A stretch of DNA of 64,000 nt from Piromyces finnis finn (Eukaryota; Fungi; Neocallimastigomycota), in assembly GCA_002104945.1 (NCBI GenBank), contig MCFH01000055.1, positions 311,654 to 375,653 of the forward strand. The letters are read 5' to 3'. A program made the position numbers and the translations under genes. A model generated the notes under the pieces. It had not been told where the DNA came from, searched no databases, and was given only the letters and a program-made list of their open reading frames with translations. This document shows, in pieces, positions 2,267-64,000 of this stretch. Positions within the stretch are counted from its first letter, which is position 1, and each line of letters begins with the position of its first letter.

Positions 2267-2449
2267 ATAATCAAATCAAGATACATTTTGTTTAAAAATT
2301 ATAATTAAATTAAATACAAAAAAAAAATATCATTATTCTTTACTTTAAAAAAAAAAAAAGAGTATCATTACTAAATTATTATTTTAAAAATAAATTGATA
2401 AATTTATATTTTTTCTTTTTTTCAATTTTTTAAATAATAATAAATAAAC

Positions 2450-4585
2450 ATGGATAAGAAGGTTATTGGTATGAATAATTTATTTTATATTTTTATTTAA
2501 TTTTCTAAAAAAGAATAAAATAAATGAAAATTAAATATCAACATATCAATATGAATACTTAATCAAGGAATAAAAAAAAATATGAACTTATATATTAATT
2601 ATTTTAAATATAAATAGGAGTTCTTGGTGGCGGTCAATTAGGTCGTATGATGATGGAACCAGCCAACAATTTAAATTTAAAGGTTTGCATTCTTGATGCT
2701 AATGATGCCCCAGCTACTCAAGTTCAAGTTTCCGACCACGTTGATGGTGATTTCAAAGATGAAGCTAAGATTCAAGAATTAGCCAAGAAATGTGATGTTT
2801 TAACTATGGAAATCGAACATGTTAACTGTGATGCTCTTGAACGTATTGCTAAGGAAAATCCAAATATCGATATTCAACCAACTCCACAAACCGTTAGAAT
2901 CATTCAAGATAAATTCCTTCAAAAGGAACACCTTAAACAATTCAATATTCCACTTCCAGAATATGCTAGTGTTACTGATAAGCAATCAATTTTAGATATT
3001 GCCAACAATCAAGGCTTTGGTTTCCCAATTATGTTAAAATCCAGAAAGTTAGCTTATGATGGTAGAGGTAATGCTGTTATTAATAACGAAAATGAAATTG
3101 ATGATGCTATTAAGGCCTTAAACCCATCAGGTGCAAATGATGCTTTATATGTTGAAAAGTGGGTTCCATATGCTAAGGAATTAGCTGTTATGGTTGCTCG
3201 TAGTAAATCTGGTAACACTGTTTCTTACGAAGCTGTTGAAACTATTCAAAAAGACAATATTTGTCATATCGTATTCGCTCCAGCCCAAATTGATGGTTTA
3301 ATTCAAAAGAATGCAAAGGCTATTGCTGAAAAGGCTATTGCTTGCTTATATGGCGCTGGTATTTTTGGTGTTGAAATGTTCTATCTTGAAAATGGTAATA
3401 TAAATTATATATATATATATAACTTATTATTTAAATATTTATATTATAAAAACTAAAATAAAATAAAACATCTGTTTATTAGAAATTATGAATTAATTTT
3501 TTTTTTATATATTATTATATATTAATAATTATTTTAAAATAAAAAAAGGTGAAATTCTCGTTAACGAAATTGCTCCACGTCCACATAATTCTGGTCATTA
3601 CACTATTGAATCTTGTGAAACTTCACAATTTGAACAACATATTCGTGCTATTTTAGATATGCCATTAGGTTCTACTAAGATGAGAGTCGGTGCCGCTGCT
3701 ATGGTTAACATTCTCGGTACTGGAAATGGTGAAGAAGGTTTAGCTGATACTCTTCGTCCTTGCCAAGCTTCTATGACTATTCCTGGTGCTACTGTTCATT
3801 TATACGGTAAACGTGAATGCCGTAAAGGTAGAAAGATGGGTCACATCACTGTAACCGCCGATACCATGCCAGAAGTTGTTGAAAAGGTTGAAAAACTTTT
3901 AGAACATATGCCAAATGGTAAGAAATATAACTTCAGCATTTCACCAATGGTTGCTATTATTATGGGTAGTGATTCCGATTTACCAACTATGAAGCCATGT
4001 GCTCAAATCTTAAAGGACTTTGATGTTCCATTTGAACTTTCTATTGTTTCTGCTCACCGTACCCCAGAAAGAATGGTTGAATATGCAAAGAATGCTCATA
4101 AGAGAGGTATTAAGTTAATTATTGCTGCCGCTGGTGGTGCTGCTCACCTTCCAGGTATGGTTGCTGCTATTACTCCACTTCCAGTTATTGGTTGTCCAGT
4201 TGCCTTAAGAGTTCTTGATGGTGTTGATTCTTTATACTCTATTGTTCAAATGCCAGTAAGTATAATAACATTTATTTTTAATAGTTTTATGATTAGAAAG
4301 CTATTTTTTTTTTTATTAATAAAAATAAAATTTAACTAATGATGATAACTTCTTAAAAAATTATTTTATTTATACTCTATATAAATTATATAGCGTGGTG
4401 TCCCAGTTGCTACTGTTGCTATCAATAACTCCACCAATGCTGCTTTATTAGCTGTTCGTATTCTTGGTTCTTCTATTCCAAAATACTTAGATAAAATGGT
4501 TAAATACCAAACTAATATGAATGAAGAAGTTTTAGTTAAAGTTGATAAATTAGAAAAGGTCGGATGGGAAAACTACCAAAAGTAA
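2450..4585 (+). CDS. ADE2: Phosphoribosylaminoimidazole carboxylase (fused PurK-PurE)
   Basis: Exons 2450-2468, 2618-3394, 3549-4255 and 4394-4585, all GT-AG. Motifs: [69 protein letters not shown]. Confidence 0.97.
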
Positions 4586-5089: not shown

Positions 5090-8744
<3,655 letters not shown>

Positions 8745-9018
8745 ATTAGTTTAATATTGATCTGAATATAATGTATTATCTATAATAAATTCTCTATTCT
8801 TTTATCATATTTATATATTAAATTTTATATTATTAAAAATTGATATTATAACAAATAATTCTATTATTTAATTAATAATAATTAAAATTTTGTATTTAAT
8901 TTTTATTCTTAATATTAATTTATGATTTATATACATATTTAGTTATTCAAAATGTATTTTTTTTTTTATAATTATATATTATATAATATAATATAATATA
9001 TTTAAATATAAATTACAT

Positions 9019-57771: not shown

Positions 57772-58329
57772 ATGGCTGAAGAACACGATCACACCTTCGA
57801 AGAAGCCGATGGTAATATTTAATTAAGCAATTAAAAAATATATGTAAAAGAAAATAATAAAATATTAATTGTAAAAATTTAATAAAATAAAATAGCCGGA
57901 GCTTCCCTTACCTACCCACTCCAATGTTCCGCTCTCCGTAAGAACGGTTTCGTTTTACTTAAGGGTCGTCCATGCAAGATCGTTGATATGTCTACCTCTA
58001 AGACTGGTAAGCACGGTCACGCTAAGGTTAACTTAGTTGGTATTGATATCTTCACTGGTAAGAAGTACGAAGATATGTCTCCATCTACCCACAACATGGA
58101 AGTTCCAAACGTCAGACGTACTGAATACACTCTTTTAGATATTGATGACGGTTACCTCAGTCTTATGACTTCCGATGGTGATACTAAGGATGATATCAGA
58201 AAGCCAGCTGATCCACTTGGTGCTGAAATCGAAGCTGCTTTCGAAGAAGGTAAGGAAATCATCGTTACCATCATCCAAGCTATGGACGAAGAAGCTTGTA
58301 TTGCCTGGAAGGAAGCCCCACAATCCTAA
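57772..58329 (+). CDS. EIF5A: Translation factor eIF5A
   Basis: Exons 57772-57811 and 57896-58329: [31 protein letters not shown]...[13 protein letters not shown] (hypusine site). Confidence 0.98.
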
Positions 58330-58753
58330 GCGATTTAATAAAATTATCTTTATCGAAGTATTAAGGTAAAAATTCCCTTGATACAGAATAAAATTCTTAA
58401 CAAGAAAACCAAAATCATATTTATAAATTCATAGAAAAGTTAATTCAAAATAAAAAAGCAAATATAAAAATAATATTAAATTGTTATTATAAAATATTTA
58501 AATAATATAATATAAAAATGATTTAATAAATAAAAAAAATAGAAAATTCAAAAAAGAATAATGTCGTTTTTATGAAAGTGTTTATATATATTAGTGTAAA
58601 TCTTAATACTTGTGAATAAGAATATTTTTAGTAAATATATGATTTAATTTAAAAGTATAAATTATGACGTGTTTATTAATTTTTATGGTTAATGAAAAAA
58701 AAATGTAAATTTAAAAATGCTTTATATATTTTTAAATAATTATATTATCAAAA

Positions 58754-58836
58754 GCCGGGATGGCCGAGTTGGTCTAAGGCGGCGCACTCAAGATGCGTTT
58801 TCGAAAGAAGCGCGAGTTCGAATCTCGCTTCCGGCA
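58754..58836 (+). tRNA. tRNA-Leu(CAA), intronless, long variable arm
   Basis: Acceptor stem GCCGGGA/TTCCGGC plus discriminator A; D-loop with TTGG; anticodon arm GCGCA-CTCAAGA-TGCGT; variable arm with a GAAA loop; T-arm GCGAG-TTCGAAT-CTCGC. Confidence 0.97.
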
Positions 58837-58843
58837 AATTTAA

Positions 58844-58867
58844 TTTTATTAAAGTATTGGTCTTTTT
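58844..58867 (+). terminator. Probable Pol III terminator T-runs (T4 at 58844-58847, T5 at 58863-58867)
   Basis: Oligo-T runs directly downstream of the tRNA gene. Confidence 0.6.
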
Positions 58868-58871
58868 CATT

Positions 58872-59352
58872 CCCTCTTGGGAACGTGCCTTCATTTATTT
58901 AATAAATGTAATTTCTCAAGGGGGTCTACTCATGCTCATGGTACTGAGAGAGTAGAAAGAATTAAATCCAAGTATTGCGCAATGGATGCTTGGTGCCCTC
59001 TTAGGAATGTGCCTTCATTTATTTAATAAATGTAATTTCTCAAGGGGGTCTACTCATGCCCCTCTTGGGAACGTGCCTTCATTTATTTAATAAATGTAGT
59101 TTCTCAAGGGGGTCTACTCATGCTCATGGTACTGAGAGAGTAGAAAGAATTAAATCCAAGTATTGCGCAATGGATGCTTGGTGCCCTCTTAGGAATGTGC
59201 CTTCATTTATTTAATAAATGTAATTTCTCAAGGGGGTCTACTCATGCTCATGGTACTGAGAGAGTAGAAAGAATTAAATCCAAGCATTGCGCAATGGATG
59301 CTTGGTTAGTCTTCAAGGGAAAATTATTAGGACTAAGCTCATGGTACTGAGC
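58872..59352 (+). repeat. Complex tandem array of hairpin-forming units (A 63 bp x4, B ~61 bp x3, plus terminal hairpins)
   Basis: A at 58872-58934, B 58935-58995, A' 58996-59058, A 59060-59122, B 59123-59183, A' 59184-59246, B' 59247-59306, then a unique hairpin and GCTCATGGTACTGAGC (59337-59352). Copies differ by only 1-3 nt. Confidence 0.95.
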
Positions 59353-59951
59353 GATTAAAAAACATTTTATTCATCAAATTTAAGTATTTGATGAATAAGT
59401 GAATGTTTGATTTTTCAGGTAAGTTTGTATAGTATTTAATTAGAAGAGTAATACATTTTGTTGCTGTATTTTTTCTTTTATTCATGTATTCATGTAGTAC
59501 TACTCTTCTCTTGTAAGAATCCAATGTAGTCAACTTTAGCATTTGCATTGTACTTTTATATTCATGTAGCTATTGTTGTATTGTTTCTTGTAAGAGACTG
59601 ATTCACTCTACATCATGTAAAAATACTATTCACAAGCTTTCTGGTGTCGACATTCTTGATTCAAATTTTTTACCAATTTAAATATTTAATGAAAAGTAAA
59701 GTCAAACAAGTTTAGTGTCAAAAAGCGATTCGAATTTACTAACAACAAACCAAAACTAGAATTTTTAAAGAAAATTTACAACTAGAATTCAAAAAATAAG
59801 AAACTTTAAACAAAGCATCGTAACAATTTTTGTACTATCCAGTACTTTTAAGAAGAGAGAGAGAGACAGATTTTTTTCCATATACGTTATATTTGTAATT
59901 TTTATTAGTATTTATTTTATATTCAATATTTTTTAATTAGAATTTATTATC

Positions 59952-62900
59952 ATGTCAGTCCTTTATATTAAAGATAAGAATTATATCAGACGTGGTACCC
60001 GGTCTTATGGTATCCCCTTAGATGATATTCGCTCCTTCTTTATCCGTGGTATTCGATCATGGTCAGTAAATATGCTATGGGAAAAACTCGAGGTTATTCT
60101 AGAAGATAAATTTAATTCAGTTATTAGTGTTAAATATTTTCAAACTTTCAATGATCACTTTTTCTTAGTCAAGGTTCATGGTTCATCAAAAGATTGTATT
60201 AAAATCTTACACATGTTAAAGAAGAAACTTTCAGTTACCTCAATTTCCTTTTCAGCTCGTAGTAGAAGGAATCACAAATACACTTTTTCCACTCTCAAAC
60301 GTAAAATTTTAGTTTCTAATAAACATCAACATTCTATTCAACAATCATTTCAACAATCAGTTCAACAATCAGTTCAACAATCTCATCAACAATCCGATCT
60401 TCAACGAGATCTTCAACAGGATCTTCAACAAGTTTCCCATCATGAAAATATTCCAGATCTACAGCAAACACAATTTCAATCTCAACATTCAACAATTAAT
60501 TCTAATAGTTCTATCAACTCTGATAACAGTTCAATAGTTGATAGTTCTTCAGTTTCACAGCCATCTAGTAATAGTTCTACTTATTCCTCTGATGCATCAT
60601 CCATTAATAACGATGACTTTAATAATAATAATAATAGCAACGATTCTTCCTCATCCAACAAGCCTGATAACTTTTCTTTTTGTCTTAGTTGGAACACCAA
60701 TGGGTGGAATCATGAAAAGAGAGATAGTATTAGCTATTTCACAGCTATTTTCAAACCATTATTCTTATGTTTCCAAGAAACTGGTAATGGTTCTGGATCG
60801 AATACAGATTATCCTTGTCGTGTTACTTTGCGAAACTATAGACACTTTTTCAAGAAAGCTGACGAATCAGTTCCGGGAATGAGAGGTTTATATTTAGGTT
60901 TTCACAATTCGTGTCAAGCCTCACTTGAAAACTTCTCTGGAAAGTATATTATTTCTATTTATACTTTTAGTCTCTGGAATAGATTCAAATGCTCGATTGG
61001 AAATGTTTATATGCCTCATAGTCATCACAACATCTATGTTGATCATGCAAAGTTAGAAGTTCGCTTGTGGTTACAAACTCATTCATCCCATCCATCGATT
61101 CTTGTTGGTGATTTTAATATGTCTAAAGTAAAATTATCCAACTGGTTATCAACTAATGGATTAGGAGATTGGGAAATTCTTCCGCTTAGAGGGTCTACTA
61201 TCTCTTGGACTCGAGGTGAACAATCTTCCGACATTGACCATGCTCTTATCAATTCGAAGATGAAAGATCTTATTCACTCAGGATCATTTATAAATAATTT
61301 TTATCCTGTATCAGACCATAAGCCACTTCTTATTAATGGTAAAATTATTCCTATGGAAGATTTTTCTAATGACTTTAACGTTCCTAAGAAAATTCTGAAA
61401 TGGAATAGATTAAAATGTATTGAGGAAAAGGAATCTATTCTCAGTCATAATAAATTCCAAATACTTTCAGCAAAATTCAACGATCCTAATGTTTCTACAG
61501 ATGATCTTTCCAAAGAATTTACTTCAACTGCTTTTTCAATTGCAGACGAGCTCAGTATTACCTCAGCAAATAATGTTATAAAGTCTTCATTTCATATTTC
61601 ACAACAAATTTTTAATCTCCAAAAAATCAAAATGAAGTTGTATAAGAGATTTAAAAAAGAAAGAATTTATGATATAGATGAATTTATTAAAAGAATTAAA
61701 ATCTACCGTAAGCTCATTGATTACATCCACAAAAGATGTAATGAATTTAGGAAACAAGAATATCTTCATTGGATTAAAACAGGATGTGAGTATATGAAGA
61801 GTCATAATCCTAAGAAGGCCTGGAAATGGATCAAGAAAACTGCAAAAATTGGAAAAGATTCTTTCTTTATTGCTCAACCAATTAAAAATAAAAATGGAGA
61901 GTTAGTTGTTGCTACGGAAGAACAACTAGATGTGTGGCATGATCATTTCGAAAATCTTGCATCAGATCCAAGTGGCGTAAGTCTTGATTTGGAGCATTGG
62001 TATGAAGAACCAACGAATAAACGTTTTTCACTCCCTATGCTTGATGAATGGGATATCAACCAAGATATTAGTATTGATGAAGTCAAGTCAGCTATCCTCT
62101 CTACTCCGAATTATAAAGCATCAGGTCCGGATGGTATTCCAATTGAATTTTACAAAGCATTAATTCCATCAAGTAATGATTCTAATAATGCTACAGATAA
62201 TAATTCTTCCGGTAATACCACTTCAGATAATGATTCTTATGGTTTAAATTTTATTCTTAAATTATACAACCGTATTTGGGATGGAGACTTCCCCAACTCA
62301 TGGAATGAATCCAGTATTGTTTCTATTCCTAAGAAGGGAGATTTGACAGATTGTGATAACTATCGAGGTATATCACTTATCAATAATGGTATTAAGTTGA
62401 TTTCCAAAATTGTCACCACTAGAATCTCAGAATATGGTCTAAAGAATAATTTCATTAGACCTGAACAATTTGGTTTTCGAAAAAAGGAAGAAAGTATCAG
62501 TCTTTTCATTTCAATCCAAGAAATATGCCGTAGACGTCAATTAGATAATAAAGAGACATATTTGGCCTTTTTAGATCTCAGGAAAGCATACGATTCAGTC
62601 CCAATCGGTAATATTCTCCATAAATTAGATTGTTTAGGAATCCGAGGTAAGAGTTTACAATTCATCAAAAATTTATATTTAACATCTAAGGCTAATGTCA
62701 AATTAGATGGACAATTCTCGAAATCTTTTGATGTGAAGAAAGGAGTCCGTCAAGGATGCCCTCTTTCTCCTATTCTCTTTAATCTCTTTATTAATGATAT
62801 ATTTAAAGAGTGTGAAGATCTCGGAGTCAGTTTAGGTGACACTCGATGCTGTGGTGGACTTTTTGCAGATGATATAGTTATTTGTGCTCCAACAAGAGGA

Positions 62901-64000
62901 TGCTTAAAAAAGATGCTTAGAAGAGTTAATGAATGGGCCTTGTATAATGAAATGGAATTTGGTATCCAGAAATGTTCAACGATGGTGATTCGTCCTGAAT
63001 CAATAGAAAATCAGAACAAGAGAGATCCAACATTTTACTTAGCAGGACAACCCATTCCAACTACTGATTGTTATACTTATCTTGGTGTTCCATTTGATAA
63101 GAATCTGTCCCTTAAACCAGTTATTAAAGCTCTTAATAACAAGGTTTTGAAAGGACTTTTCTCAGTCAGTAAATTCTTAAGAAATCCTAATATTCCTATT
63201 CCCTTCAAAAAGCTAGTACTTAACTCACAAGTGATTAGCAGAGTTTCATACTTTGCACCATTACTTGGATCCAACAAAGCCAGGTCTAGGATTGCACAGA
63301 AGCATGTTAACAAAGGAATACGATGGGTTGCCGGAGTTCATAAAGCTGTATCGTTTATATCTTTATACTCTATCTCAAAAGATTTGAATATTCCTCCATT
63401 GTCAGCCAAATGTGCATTAGCTCAGGTTAGATGTTTTAACAAATGGAAAAACTCAAATTGTATTATCTCACACCTTGTCAATTACATTCCTAAATTTAGA
63501 AAATACACGTGGTGCAAATCAAGTAGGACACTTGATAAAAAACTAAAGAAACATGGAGATGTTAAAGCAGTTAAAAACTTTTATTGGAAAGATCTCAAAG
63601 GGAATTCAATCAAAGCGCAATATTATGATGATAATAAGTTTATTGATACTAAAGATTTTATTAAATTATGTTATGAGTACCCAGAGTTTGCCTATGGCTT
63701 CTACTGGCTATTGAAAGCAAGAAGCGGATACAAGTTGGATGCTAGAGTTGCCAAAGCTGCCAAATTTGTTGATCCAGTTTGTCCTAACTACTGTCCATGT
63801 TGCAAGTGTGGAGATCAAAGTATTAAACATTGGTTATTAGATTGTCCAACATTTAGAGATATCCGTATTAAACATTATGATTCCATAGTCCAGCTATTAA
63901 ATTTTTTCAGTCAACGTAATTCCAATAGTCCTATCAATAATAATGAAATTGATAATATCAGTAGAGATAGTAATAATATTAATAGCAATAGTCCAATAGT
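59952..64000 (+). mobile_element. Non-LTR retrotransposon (LINE), single ORF: RRM-like, Q/S/N linker, APE endonuclease, RT, Cys/His knuckle; runs off the right edge
   Basis: Frame is open from ATG 59952 to the edge (>1349 codons). APE motifs: SWNTNG, FQET, NVYMP, LVGDFN, DIDHAL, SDHKP. RT motifs: KASGPDGIP, PKKGDLTDCDNYRGISL, QFGFR, FLDLRKAYDSV, GVRQGCPLSPILF, LFADD, YTYLG. Knuckle: CPCCKCGDQSIKHWLLDC. Confidence 0.96.

Follow-up and report, generated by a model that had tools for sequence, protein, structure and literature searches.

The stretch of DNA analysed here (the window, 64 kb in full length) is part of contig MCFH01000055.1 of the gut fungus Piromyces finnis (C184:311654-375653). 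Towards its right end a leucine transfer RNA (tRNA) gene is followed by an array of tandem repeats and by a long open reading frame (ORF). As set out below, the repeats and the ORF belong to one retrotransposon, which is a young L1-like long interspersed nuclear element (LINE) with a putatively self-renewing monomer array at its 5' end and with a minor, orientation-specific hot spot of insertion behind tRNA genes.

The original prediction, which had been made from the letters of the sequence, placed the end of the tRNA-Leu(CAA) gene at 58836, the end of the following T-run at 58867 and the start of the array at 58872. All these coordinates proved to be correct when the region was analysed with ARAGORN, Rfam and Tandem Repeats Finder. 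The ORF for an apurinic/apyrimidinic endonuclease (APE) and a reverse transcriptase was likewise found as predicted: its ATG at 59952 lies 645 nt past the array, the frame is open up to position 64000, and both domains were recovered with Pfam. The tRNA gene, the array and the ORF are all encoded on the plus strand (Table 1). According to ARAGORN the tRNA-Leu(CAA) gene is the sole tRNA gene across the 64-kb window. The end of the window coincides with the end of the contig, which has a length of 375,653 bases, and therefore the 3' end of this copy and its target-site duplication are not assembled.

Table 1. Features at the right end of the window (window positions).
Feature	Position	Strand	Evidence
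tRNA-Leu(CAA) gene	58754-58836	+	ARAGORN; Rfam RF00005, 57.5 bits
tRNA trailer, with TTTT at 58844-58847 and TTTTT at 58863-58867	58837-58871	+	read directly
5' monomer array, unit order A-B-A-A-B-A-B	58872-59306	+	Tandem Repeats Finder, unit mapping
Unique 5' leader, beginning with a degenerate monomer	59307-59951	+	
Single ORF, first 1,349 of ~1,508 codons, cut by the contig end	59952-64000	+	
N-terminal domain, conserved, ~105 aa	59952-60278	+	alignment; AlphaFold2
APE-type endonuclease domain with motifs QETG, GDFN, SDIDH and SDH	60684-61325	+	Pfam PF03372 (Exo_endo_phos), aa 245-456
Reverse transcriptase domain, FADD box at 62862-62873	62325-63092	+	Pfam PF00078 (RVT_1), aa 792-1047, E 7.6e-36
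C-terminal CCHC zinc knuckle, aa 1277-1298	63780-63845	+	C1281, C1284, H1293 and C1298 invariant in the family alignment

Upstream of the tRNA gene, an ORF of 113 amino acids (aa) at 57988-58329 on the plus strand reads as a putative eIF5A by its hypusine-site motif. It would place the end of a housekeeping exon about 425 bp upstream of the tRNA-Leu gene.

Anatomy, copy number and protein of the element

As coordinate ruler for the BLAST comparisons we used the 5.1 kb of the element present in the window, extended by the terminal 716 nt of another copy with 99.9% identity. Whole elements were read in twenty 10-kb stretches. With the array version of the window the element is about 5,845 bp long. 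The same leader and the same start of the ORF follow the array in all 30 loci that were fetched, and consequently the array is the 5' end of the element. This bears out the claim that 58872-64000 represents a single young element whose 5' end is modular, as array, leader and ORF occur together in 30/30 loci and the copies are 96-99.9% identical to the window copy. Arrays lacking the ORF, which the original prediction had named as an observation that would speak against it, were not seen among these loci.

The copy number was estimated with a 41-mer spanning the junction between array and leader (59304-59344). Allowing up to three mismatches, this sequence matched the genome 286 times, and the reversed pattern used as control gave no match. 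The genome thus contains at least 286 copies with an intact 5' end. The array itself gave 53 scored matches and 376 first-look candidates genome-wide. In about 18 copies the state of the ORF could be judged: it was intact in eight (1,493-1,522 aa), a ninth was open to the end of the locus and the others were interrupted. The window element is a young, probably still active LINE of Piromyces finnis.

The element ends with ...GATGCCGTT (equal to ...TTTGATGCCGTT), followed by 16-59 A, such a poly(A) tail being present in 24 copies. Three copies with unique flanks on both sides (L033, L039 and L045) are framed by target-site duplications of 14-15 bp, each starting with A. Long terminal repeats (LTRs) are absent, whereas a poly(A) tail and short target-site duplications are present, as in APE-type poly(A) LINEs. 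The protein has the features of a LINE as well, with an APE endonuclease that retains its catalytic residues, then a reverse transcriptase with a YxDD-type box (FADD) and, behind it, a C-terminal CCHC motif. We conclude that the element is an ordinary APE-type poly(A) LINE which uses target-primed reverse transcription.

A single ORF of about 1,508 aa encodes all of these domains; a ferredoxin-like domain at the N-terminus comes first, followed by APE, reverse transcriptase and CCHC knuckle. The QETG, GDFN, SDIDH and SDH motifs, the FADD box and the CCHC knuckle are invariant in 17 homologs. A separate upstream ORF1, which is a trait of the L1 clade in the strict sense, was not found, as the leader contains no ORF of at least 50 aa with coding character. 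The N-terminal 105 aa or so were modelled with AlphaFold2 as a beta-alpha-beta-beta-alpha-beta fold of ferredoxin-like type (pLDDT 83.9). Structure comparison of the model gave matches of a generic kind (ferredoxin-like, RAM, ACT and RRM, Z up to 8.3), and searches with Pfam, ESM Atlas, Foldseek and VIA-align did not find a specific family for this domain beyond the generic ferredoxin-like fold.

The closest proteins in the large collection searched share 54-69% identity and are encoded on contigs of gut metagenomes and of JGI. The sole named close match is a protein of Orpinomyces (43%), and the next ones, among them proteins of Smittium, a microsporidian and Galdieria, are at most 32% identical. 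Relatives were also present on eight metagenome contigs (43-54% identity); these contigs are all short and lack a tRNA gene, and the one checked for a 5' array (L051) had none. Among solved structures human L1 ORF2p was the best relative (E 8.6e-33) and outscored R2 (E 9e-18), which is the sole indication for the suggested L1-like placement. With human LINE-1 the element shares the APE endonuclease, duplications of about 15 bp (which in the Piromyces element start with A) and the poly(A) tail, but it differs by the missing separate ORF1 and by an ORF with an N-terminal domain of predicted ferredoxin-like fold and a C-terminal domain that is conserved.

The same composite of a truncated copy, poly(A), a 123-nt piece of the ORF and a full-length copy occurs at two loci of different contigs, L024 (C177:330931-334181) and L025 (C50:20865-24115). 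Either the segment was duplicated or the assembly is redundant at this point. In the C50 copy the ORF is interrupted early by a stop.

Structure of the 5' monomer array

Tandem Repeats Finder detected periods of 64, 124 and 188 nt in the array, the long periods with 96-99% matches. These periods are composed of A units of 64 nt and B units of 60 nt. In the window, A units start at 58872, 58996, 59060 and 59184 and B units at 58936, 59124 and 59248, with a non-canonical restart of an A unit directly behind another A unit at 59059/59060. The number of units varies between copies from 2 to more than 7, and in all 30 loci the units are joined to the body of the element. Regardless of unit number, the first base of an A unit (CCCTCTTGGG) is the exact start of most full-length copies. 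A variable number of units at the 5' end that is linked to the body is the hallmark of LINEs with tandem monomers; a promoter role of the monomers is putative.

The 5' untranslated region (UTR) of mouse L1 (A, Tf and Gf), likewise a poly(A) LINE, consists of a variable number of tandem monomers. The Piromyces element resembles mouse L1 in having such tandem 5' monomers but its units, of 124 nt (A+B) or, where only A is present, about 68 nt, are unrelated in sequence. A further difference is that, behind fillers of various kinds, the Piromyces units resume precisely at base 1. We know of no comparable junction census for mouse L1.

The sequences preceding the A units were recorded for 106 A-unit starts in 37 loci. 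A canonical B end was found in 42 cases. In 23 cases the start was preceded by an A unit plus 0-9 variable nucleotides (usually ...CTCAT), in five by a cut B unit, in two by a cut A unit and in 15 by a sense-oriented piece of the leader, the ORF or the 3'UTR of the element itself. The poly(A) of an older copy (3/106) and non-element flanking sequence (16/106) account for the others. Non-canonical partners, i.e. A plus variable nucleotides, cut monomers or pieces of the element's own body, thus precede 45 of the 106 starts (about 40%).

In all these junctions the downstream partner begins with base 1 and the upstream partner is variable, which is the footprint expected of jumps from the 5' end of an RNA. 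Base 1 of the A unit would then correspond to the 5' end of the element RNA. A reverse transcriptase reaching this base would jump onto another element RNA and continue there, and by such template jumps the monomer array could be built and remodelled. The fact that A units begin anew at base 1 behind diverse fragments of the element points, as judged from the sequences, to template jumps as the process building the array, and we present this reading as new. Human LINE-1 is known for frequent 5' chimeras that arise via template switching. Serial end-to-end template jumps of non-LTR reverse transcriptases (R2 and its relatives) have been documented biochemically (PMC8594491). The fillers and restarts of the Piromyces element are the genomic footprint expected of this activity, here found in natural copies at 45/106 A-unit starts; different from the biochemical case, the jumps seemingly feed the element's own 5' array.

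One junction was recurrent and found in 23 places across L031-L050: a fresh A unit starts after monomer nucleotide ~66-72, i.e. after an A unit, CTCAT and 0-3 variable nucleotides. This position would fit jumps onto abundant 5'-terminal RNAs with a length of about 68 nt. As an extreme case, a mini-copy of 210 bp was observed on C223 behind a tRNA-Thr gene (L047, 3001-3212). It consists of three tandem 32-nt starts of A units and the last ~85 nt of the 3'UTR followed by A32, the A starts being joined to the 3'UTR at a TTTATTTA microhomology, and a full-length copy follows immediately.

The monomer RNA was predicted to fold into three hairpins (-42 kcal/mol, z -4.9). A frequent variant of the A unit, G8A, breaks a pair without compensation, so that the hairpin is without support from covariation. 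A known ribozyme (HDV-like or hammerhead) or another RNA family was not found in an Rfam scan of 58650-60000, in which matches with E up to 10 were tRNA and noise only.

Insertion sites of the element

As stated above, the window copy lies directly behind a tRNA gene. ARAGORN was run with and without introns on 37 distinct loci, the window copy included. In four of them a tRNA gene was present (tRNA-Leu of the window, an initiator-type tRNA-Met, tRNA-Thr and tRNA-Ser), in each case just upstream of the element and on its strand. These four are the only tRNA genes in the 73.9 kb of non-element flanking sequence of the sampled loci. We then screened the whole genome for T-arm motifs with the exact monomer start 40-100 nt behind them. 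This pattern recovered the four known cases, a fifth one at C152:296374-296489 and two obvious false matches, and the controls gave no match. The tRNA of the C152 case is a presumed one, recognised by a tRNA-like T arm and acceptor end with T-runs behind them.

Altogether, five of the 286 copies with an intact 5' end (about 2%) are adjacent to a tRNA gene, all on the same strand, behind different tRNAs and 35-85 bp downstream. Counted from the 3' end of the tRNA, the first base of the element lies at +35 for tRNA-Leu, at +36 for tRNA-Thr and at +50 both for the C152 copy and for tRNA-Ser, where 26 nt from the ORF of the element come next. For the initiator tRNA-Met the distance is +85, or +34 if an intervening GC-rich piece is regarded as filler. 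This piece of 48 nt (L043, 2950-2997; C159:195948-195995) is situated between the tRNA-Met trailer and the element; it has no match in Rfam and no second copy in the genome.

With uniform insertion of 286 copies, an interval of 51 bp on one strand would be expected to receive 0.13 hits if the genome has 1,000 tRNA genes (P 3e-7) and 0.39 hits if it has 3,000 (P 5e-5). The excess downstream of tRNA genes is real but small. An obligate association would bring nearly all copies to within about 150 bp of a tRNA gene, but this holds for 5/286 copies genome-wide and for 4/37 of the sampled loci. A fixed side and orientation relative to many tRNAs was found for the subset only. Seen from the tRNA genes, one of the 63 best-scoring Rfam tRNA genes (C223:121680) coincides with an element among the 100 leader positions listed. 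Of the tRNA targeting put forward in the original prediction a minor preference for the downstream side is thus left. The idea of an obligate system had to be abandoned, since most full-length copies are placed regardless of tRNA genes, the very finding that the prediction had named as its refutation.

In a tree built from leader and ORF start, four tRNA-adjacent copies are scattered, and the window copy is the sister of a copy without a tRNA gene. A specialised tRNA-targeting subfamily was rejected on this basis.

In 10 of the 20 long loci the poly(A) tail of one copy is immediately followed by the start of a second one, resulting in head-to-tail chains, and several of the sampled 5' ends border on the poly(A) of an older, truncated copy. 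Other copies are located in unique AT-rich DNA, and taken together most insertions are found in AT-rich sequence or in poly(A) tails of older copies. Insertion into A-tracts or a hop of the reverse transcriptase from the 5' end of one RNA onto the tail of the next are possible origins of the chains. Poly(A) LINEs joined tail to head are also found at Drosophila telomeres (HeT-A/TART; PMC13534243), but the Piromyces chains are scattered and internal to contigs, and we attribute them to insertion into, or jumping onto, poly(A) tails.

At one locus on the minus strand (L046, C57:301061-311060) a full-length copy carries the same block on both sides (2402-3000 and 8309-8906). The block comprises the element's terminal ~394 nt, then A16-17, and finally a 144-nt stretch which is not part of the element (132/144 identical). 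It could be a very long duplication or the result of unequal exchange or of a jump onto a read-through transcript.

The tRNA genes themselves show some peculiarities. Five other tRNA-Leu(CAA) genes (C188, C153, C8, C167 and C135) share with the window gene only the region from -3 to +11 (window 58751-58847; 94-97% identity). This shared block ends at the first TTTT and has about the size of a transcript of RNA polymerase III (Pol III); it could reflect conserved flanks or RNA-mediated dispersal of tRNA genes. Furthermore, 33 tRNA genes have an identical Rfam score of 69.9 bits, many of them clustered on few contigs (C176, C4, C190, C184 and others), and a rough first look gave 2,914 tRNA gene candidates. 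The tRNA gene family may be unusually amplified.

Explanations for the tRNA-adjacent copies

Considering all results, we find it fairly likely that the element is a young poly(A) LINE with a self-built array for which the region downstream of tRNA genes is an opportunistic hot spot rather than the object of dedicated targeting. The upstream copy of the target-site duplication of the window element is presumably formed by the final 14-21 nt of the tRNA trailer, ending with ...GGTCTTTTTCATT. In four of the five tRNA cases the presumed duplication begins with AA(A) right after the T-run of the terminator, which amounts to an L1-type TT/AAAA site in the orientation of the tRNA and at the distance of the terminator. 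The endonuclease would nick the bottom strand where the T-run of the terminator meets an A-rich stretch, and it would do so in the open, heavily transcribed chromatin of tRNA genes. The geometry of T-run and A-run would fix both distance and orientation. We therefore prefer a hot spot, created jointly by the sequence and by the openness and heavy transcription of tRNA genes, to a dedicated tether.

Several points weigh against this explanation. Away from tRNA genes, the target-site duplications are not preceded by long T-runs, and hence a hot spot driven purely by sequence is poorly supported. Sites of the type T5+AA are abundant, with 219 in the 58.7 kb of window background, which corresponds to about 2.1e5 in the whole genome; under the generous assumption that all insertions go to such sites and that one is available at each tRNA gene, the expectation is 0.7-4 hits. 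The excess over what sequence alone predicts may accordingly be small, or it may need another factor. A 3' junction with a target-site duplication was not found for the tRNA-adjacent copies (window, Ser and C152 were searched by pattern), and thus the nick positions at tRNA genes are inferred and not seen. This includes the duplication matching the trailer 58837-58871 that had been proposed for the window copy, for which a pattern search for the 3' counterpart gave no match; the copy runs off the contig end. The count of five is a lower bound, as the pattern requires an exact monomer start. Finally, the transcription start at base 1 of the A unit and the template jumps are readings from DNA alone.

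The strongest of the alternatives, which we nevertheless consider unlikely, is dedicated targeting as in the Dictyostelium element TRE3. In that case a domain of the element protein, e.g. the N-terminal one, would contact TFIIIC, TFIIIB or the termination complex and guide a fraction of the integrations. Five independent tRNA species, a strict same-strand orientation and distances of +35 to +50 in four of the five cases are in line with this, as is the conservation of the N-terminal domain, and sequence alone explains the subset poorly given that duplications elsewhere do not follow T-runs. Moreover, the geometry equals that of TRE3, which inserts 40-150 bp downstream of tRNA genes and shares their transcriptional orientation (PMC5911963). 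The two elements also agree in the order of APE, reverse transcriptase and zinc finger and in the oligo(A)/poly(A) tail (PMC5911963, PMC5006619). However, TRE3 has two ORFs and the Piromyces element has one, and TRE3 is 'always' found near tRNA genes, with TREs occupying 61% of the D. discoideum tRNA genes (PMC5006619). In P. finnis, the values of about 2% of the 5'-intact copies and 1/63 best-scoring tRNA genes correspond to an association that is about fifty-fold weaker per copy, with the same geometry. The copy tree does not contain a targeting subfamily, and the position of the terminator T-run also predicts orientation and distance. Insertion downstream of tRNA genes has been reported for dictyostelids only (PMC5911963), and a full-text literature search combining Neocallimastigomycota, retrotransposon and tRNA yielded no paper describing such an element. 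That protein-guided, TRE3-like integration behind Pol III genes evolved independently in an early-diverging fungus, in combination with a promoter array built by jumps of the reverse transcriptase onto short 5'-terminal element RNAs, appears rather improbable to us.

Chance adjacency in a LINE-rich genome is very improbable. With about 80% A+T the genome offers very many possible insertion sites, and 281 of the 286 copies are indeed not near tRNA genes. Yet five copies fall into one interval of 51 bp in one orientation, far above the expectation under uniform insertion, and the five loci differ in tRNA and trailer. In addition, all four tRNA genes in the flanking sequence precede an element by 35-85 bp on the same strand, and the pattern controls gave no match.

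We give even less credence to a retro-copied chimera, in which the reverse transcriptase would have jumped from the 5' end of the LINE RNA onto a pre-tRNA, similar to the U6/L1 chimeras. The frequent template switches at the RNA 5' end seen in the junction census would provide for such an event, the TTTTT of the window trailer ends four bases before the element, and the tRNA-Leu(CAA) paralogs share exactly the part from -3 to +11, up to the first TTTT. But the 24 nt between +11 and the element as well as 190 nt upstream are unique in the genome, so that no source gene with this trailer exists elsewhere, and the sequences behind tRNA-Thr, tRNA-Ser and the initiator tRNA-Met continue past the T5-T17 terminators before the element begins. 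Each of these cases is therefore a genomic tRNA locus that received an element on its downstream side, and the chimera was rejected.

Expression of the element through Pol III read-through from the tRNA gene, which the original prediction had offered as another use of this position, is the least probable of all and was rejected: tRNA and element share one strand and are 35 nt apart, but T4 and T5 terminators lie in between, the sense strand contains 24 runs of T5 or more (the first at 59411, six before the ATG), 281 of the 286 equally young copies (98%) have no tRNA gene in front, and the element has its own monomer array.

The element is a fungal LINE that shows the geometry of TRE3 in a small but clear subset of its copies. 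Either it exemplifies a preference for tRNA genes that is emerging, or no more than opportunistic, or it warns us that 'targeting' can be mimicked by nothing but T-run/A-run sequence and open chromatin. As the family is young, the junctions inside the 5' array are still readable, and they suggest that template jumping can make tandem 5' monomers. To our knowledge, the origin of the monomer arrays of mammalian L1 is still unexplained; if true, jumps onto short 5'-terminal RNAs would be a concrete mechanism for the origin of LINE 5' monomer arrays. Several copies, among them the window copy, are located at or near contig ends. To a major extent the genome of P. finnis is shaped by this probably active element, with its large number of 5'-intact copies and its head-to-tail chains.

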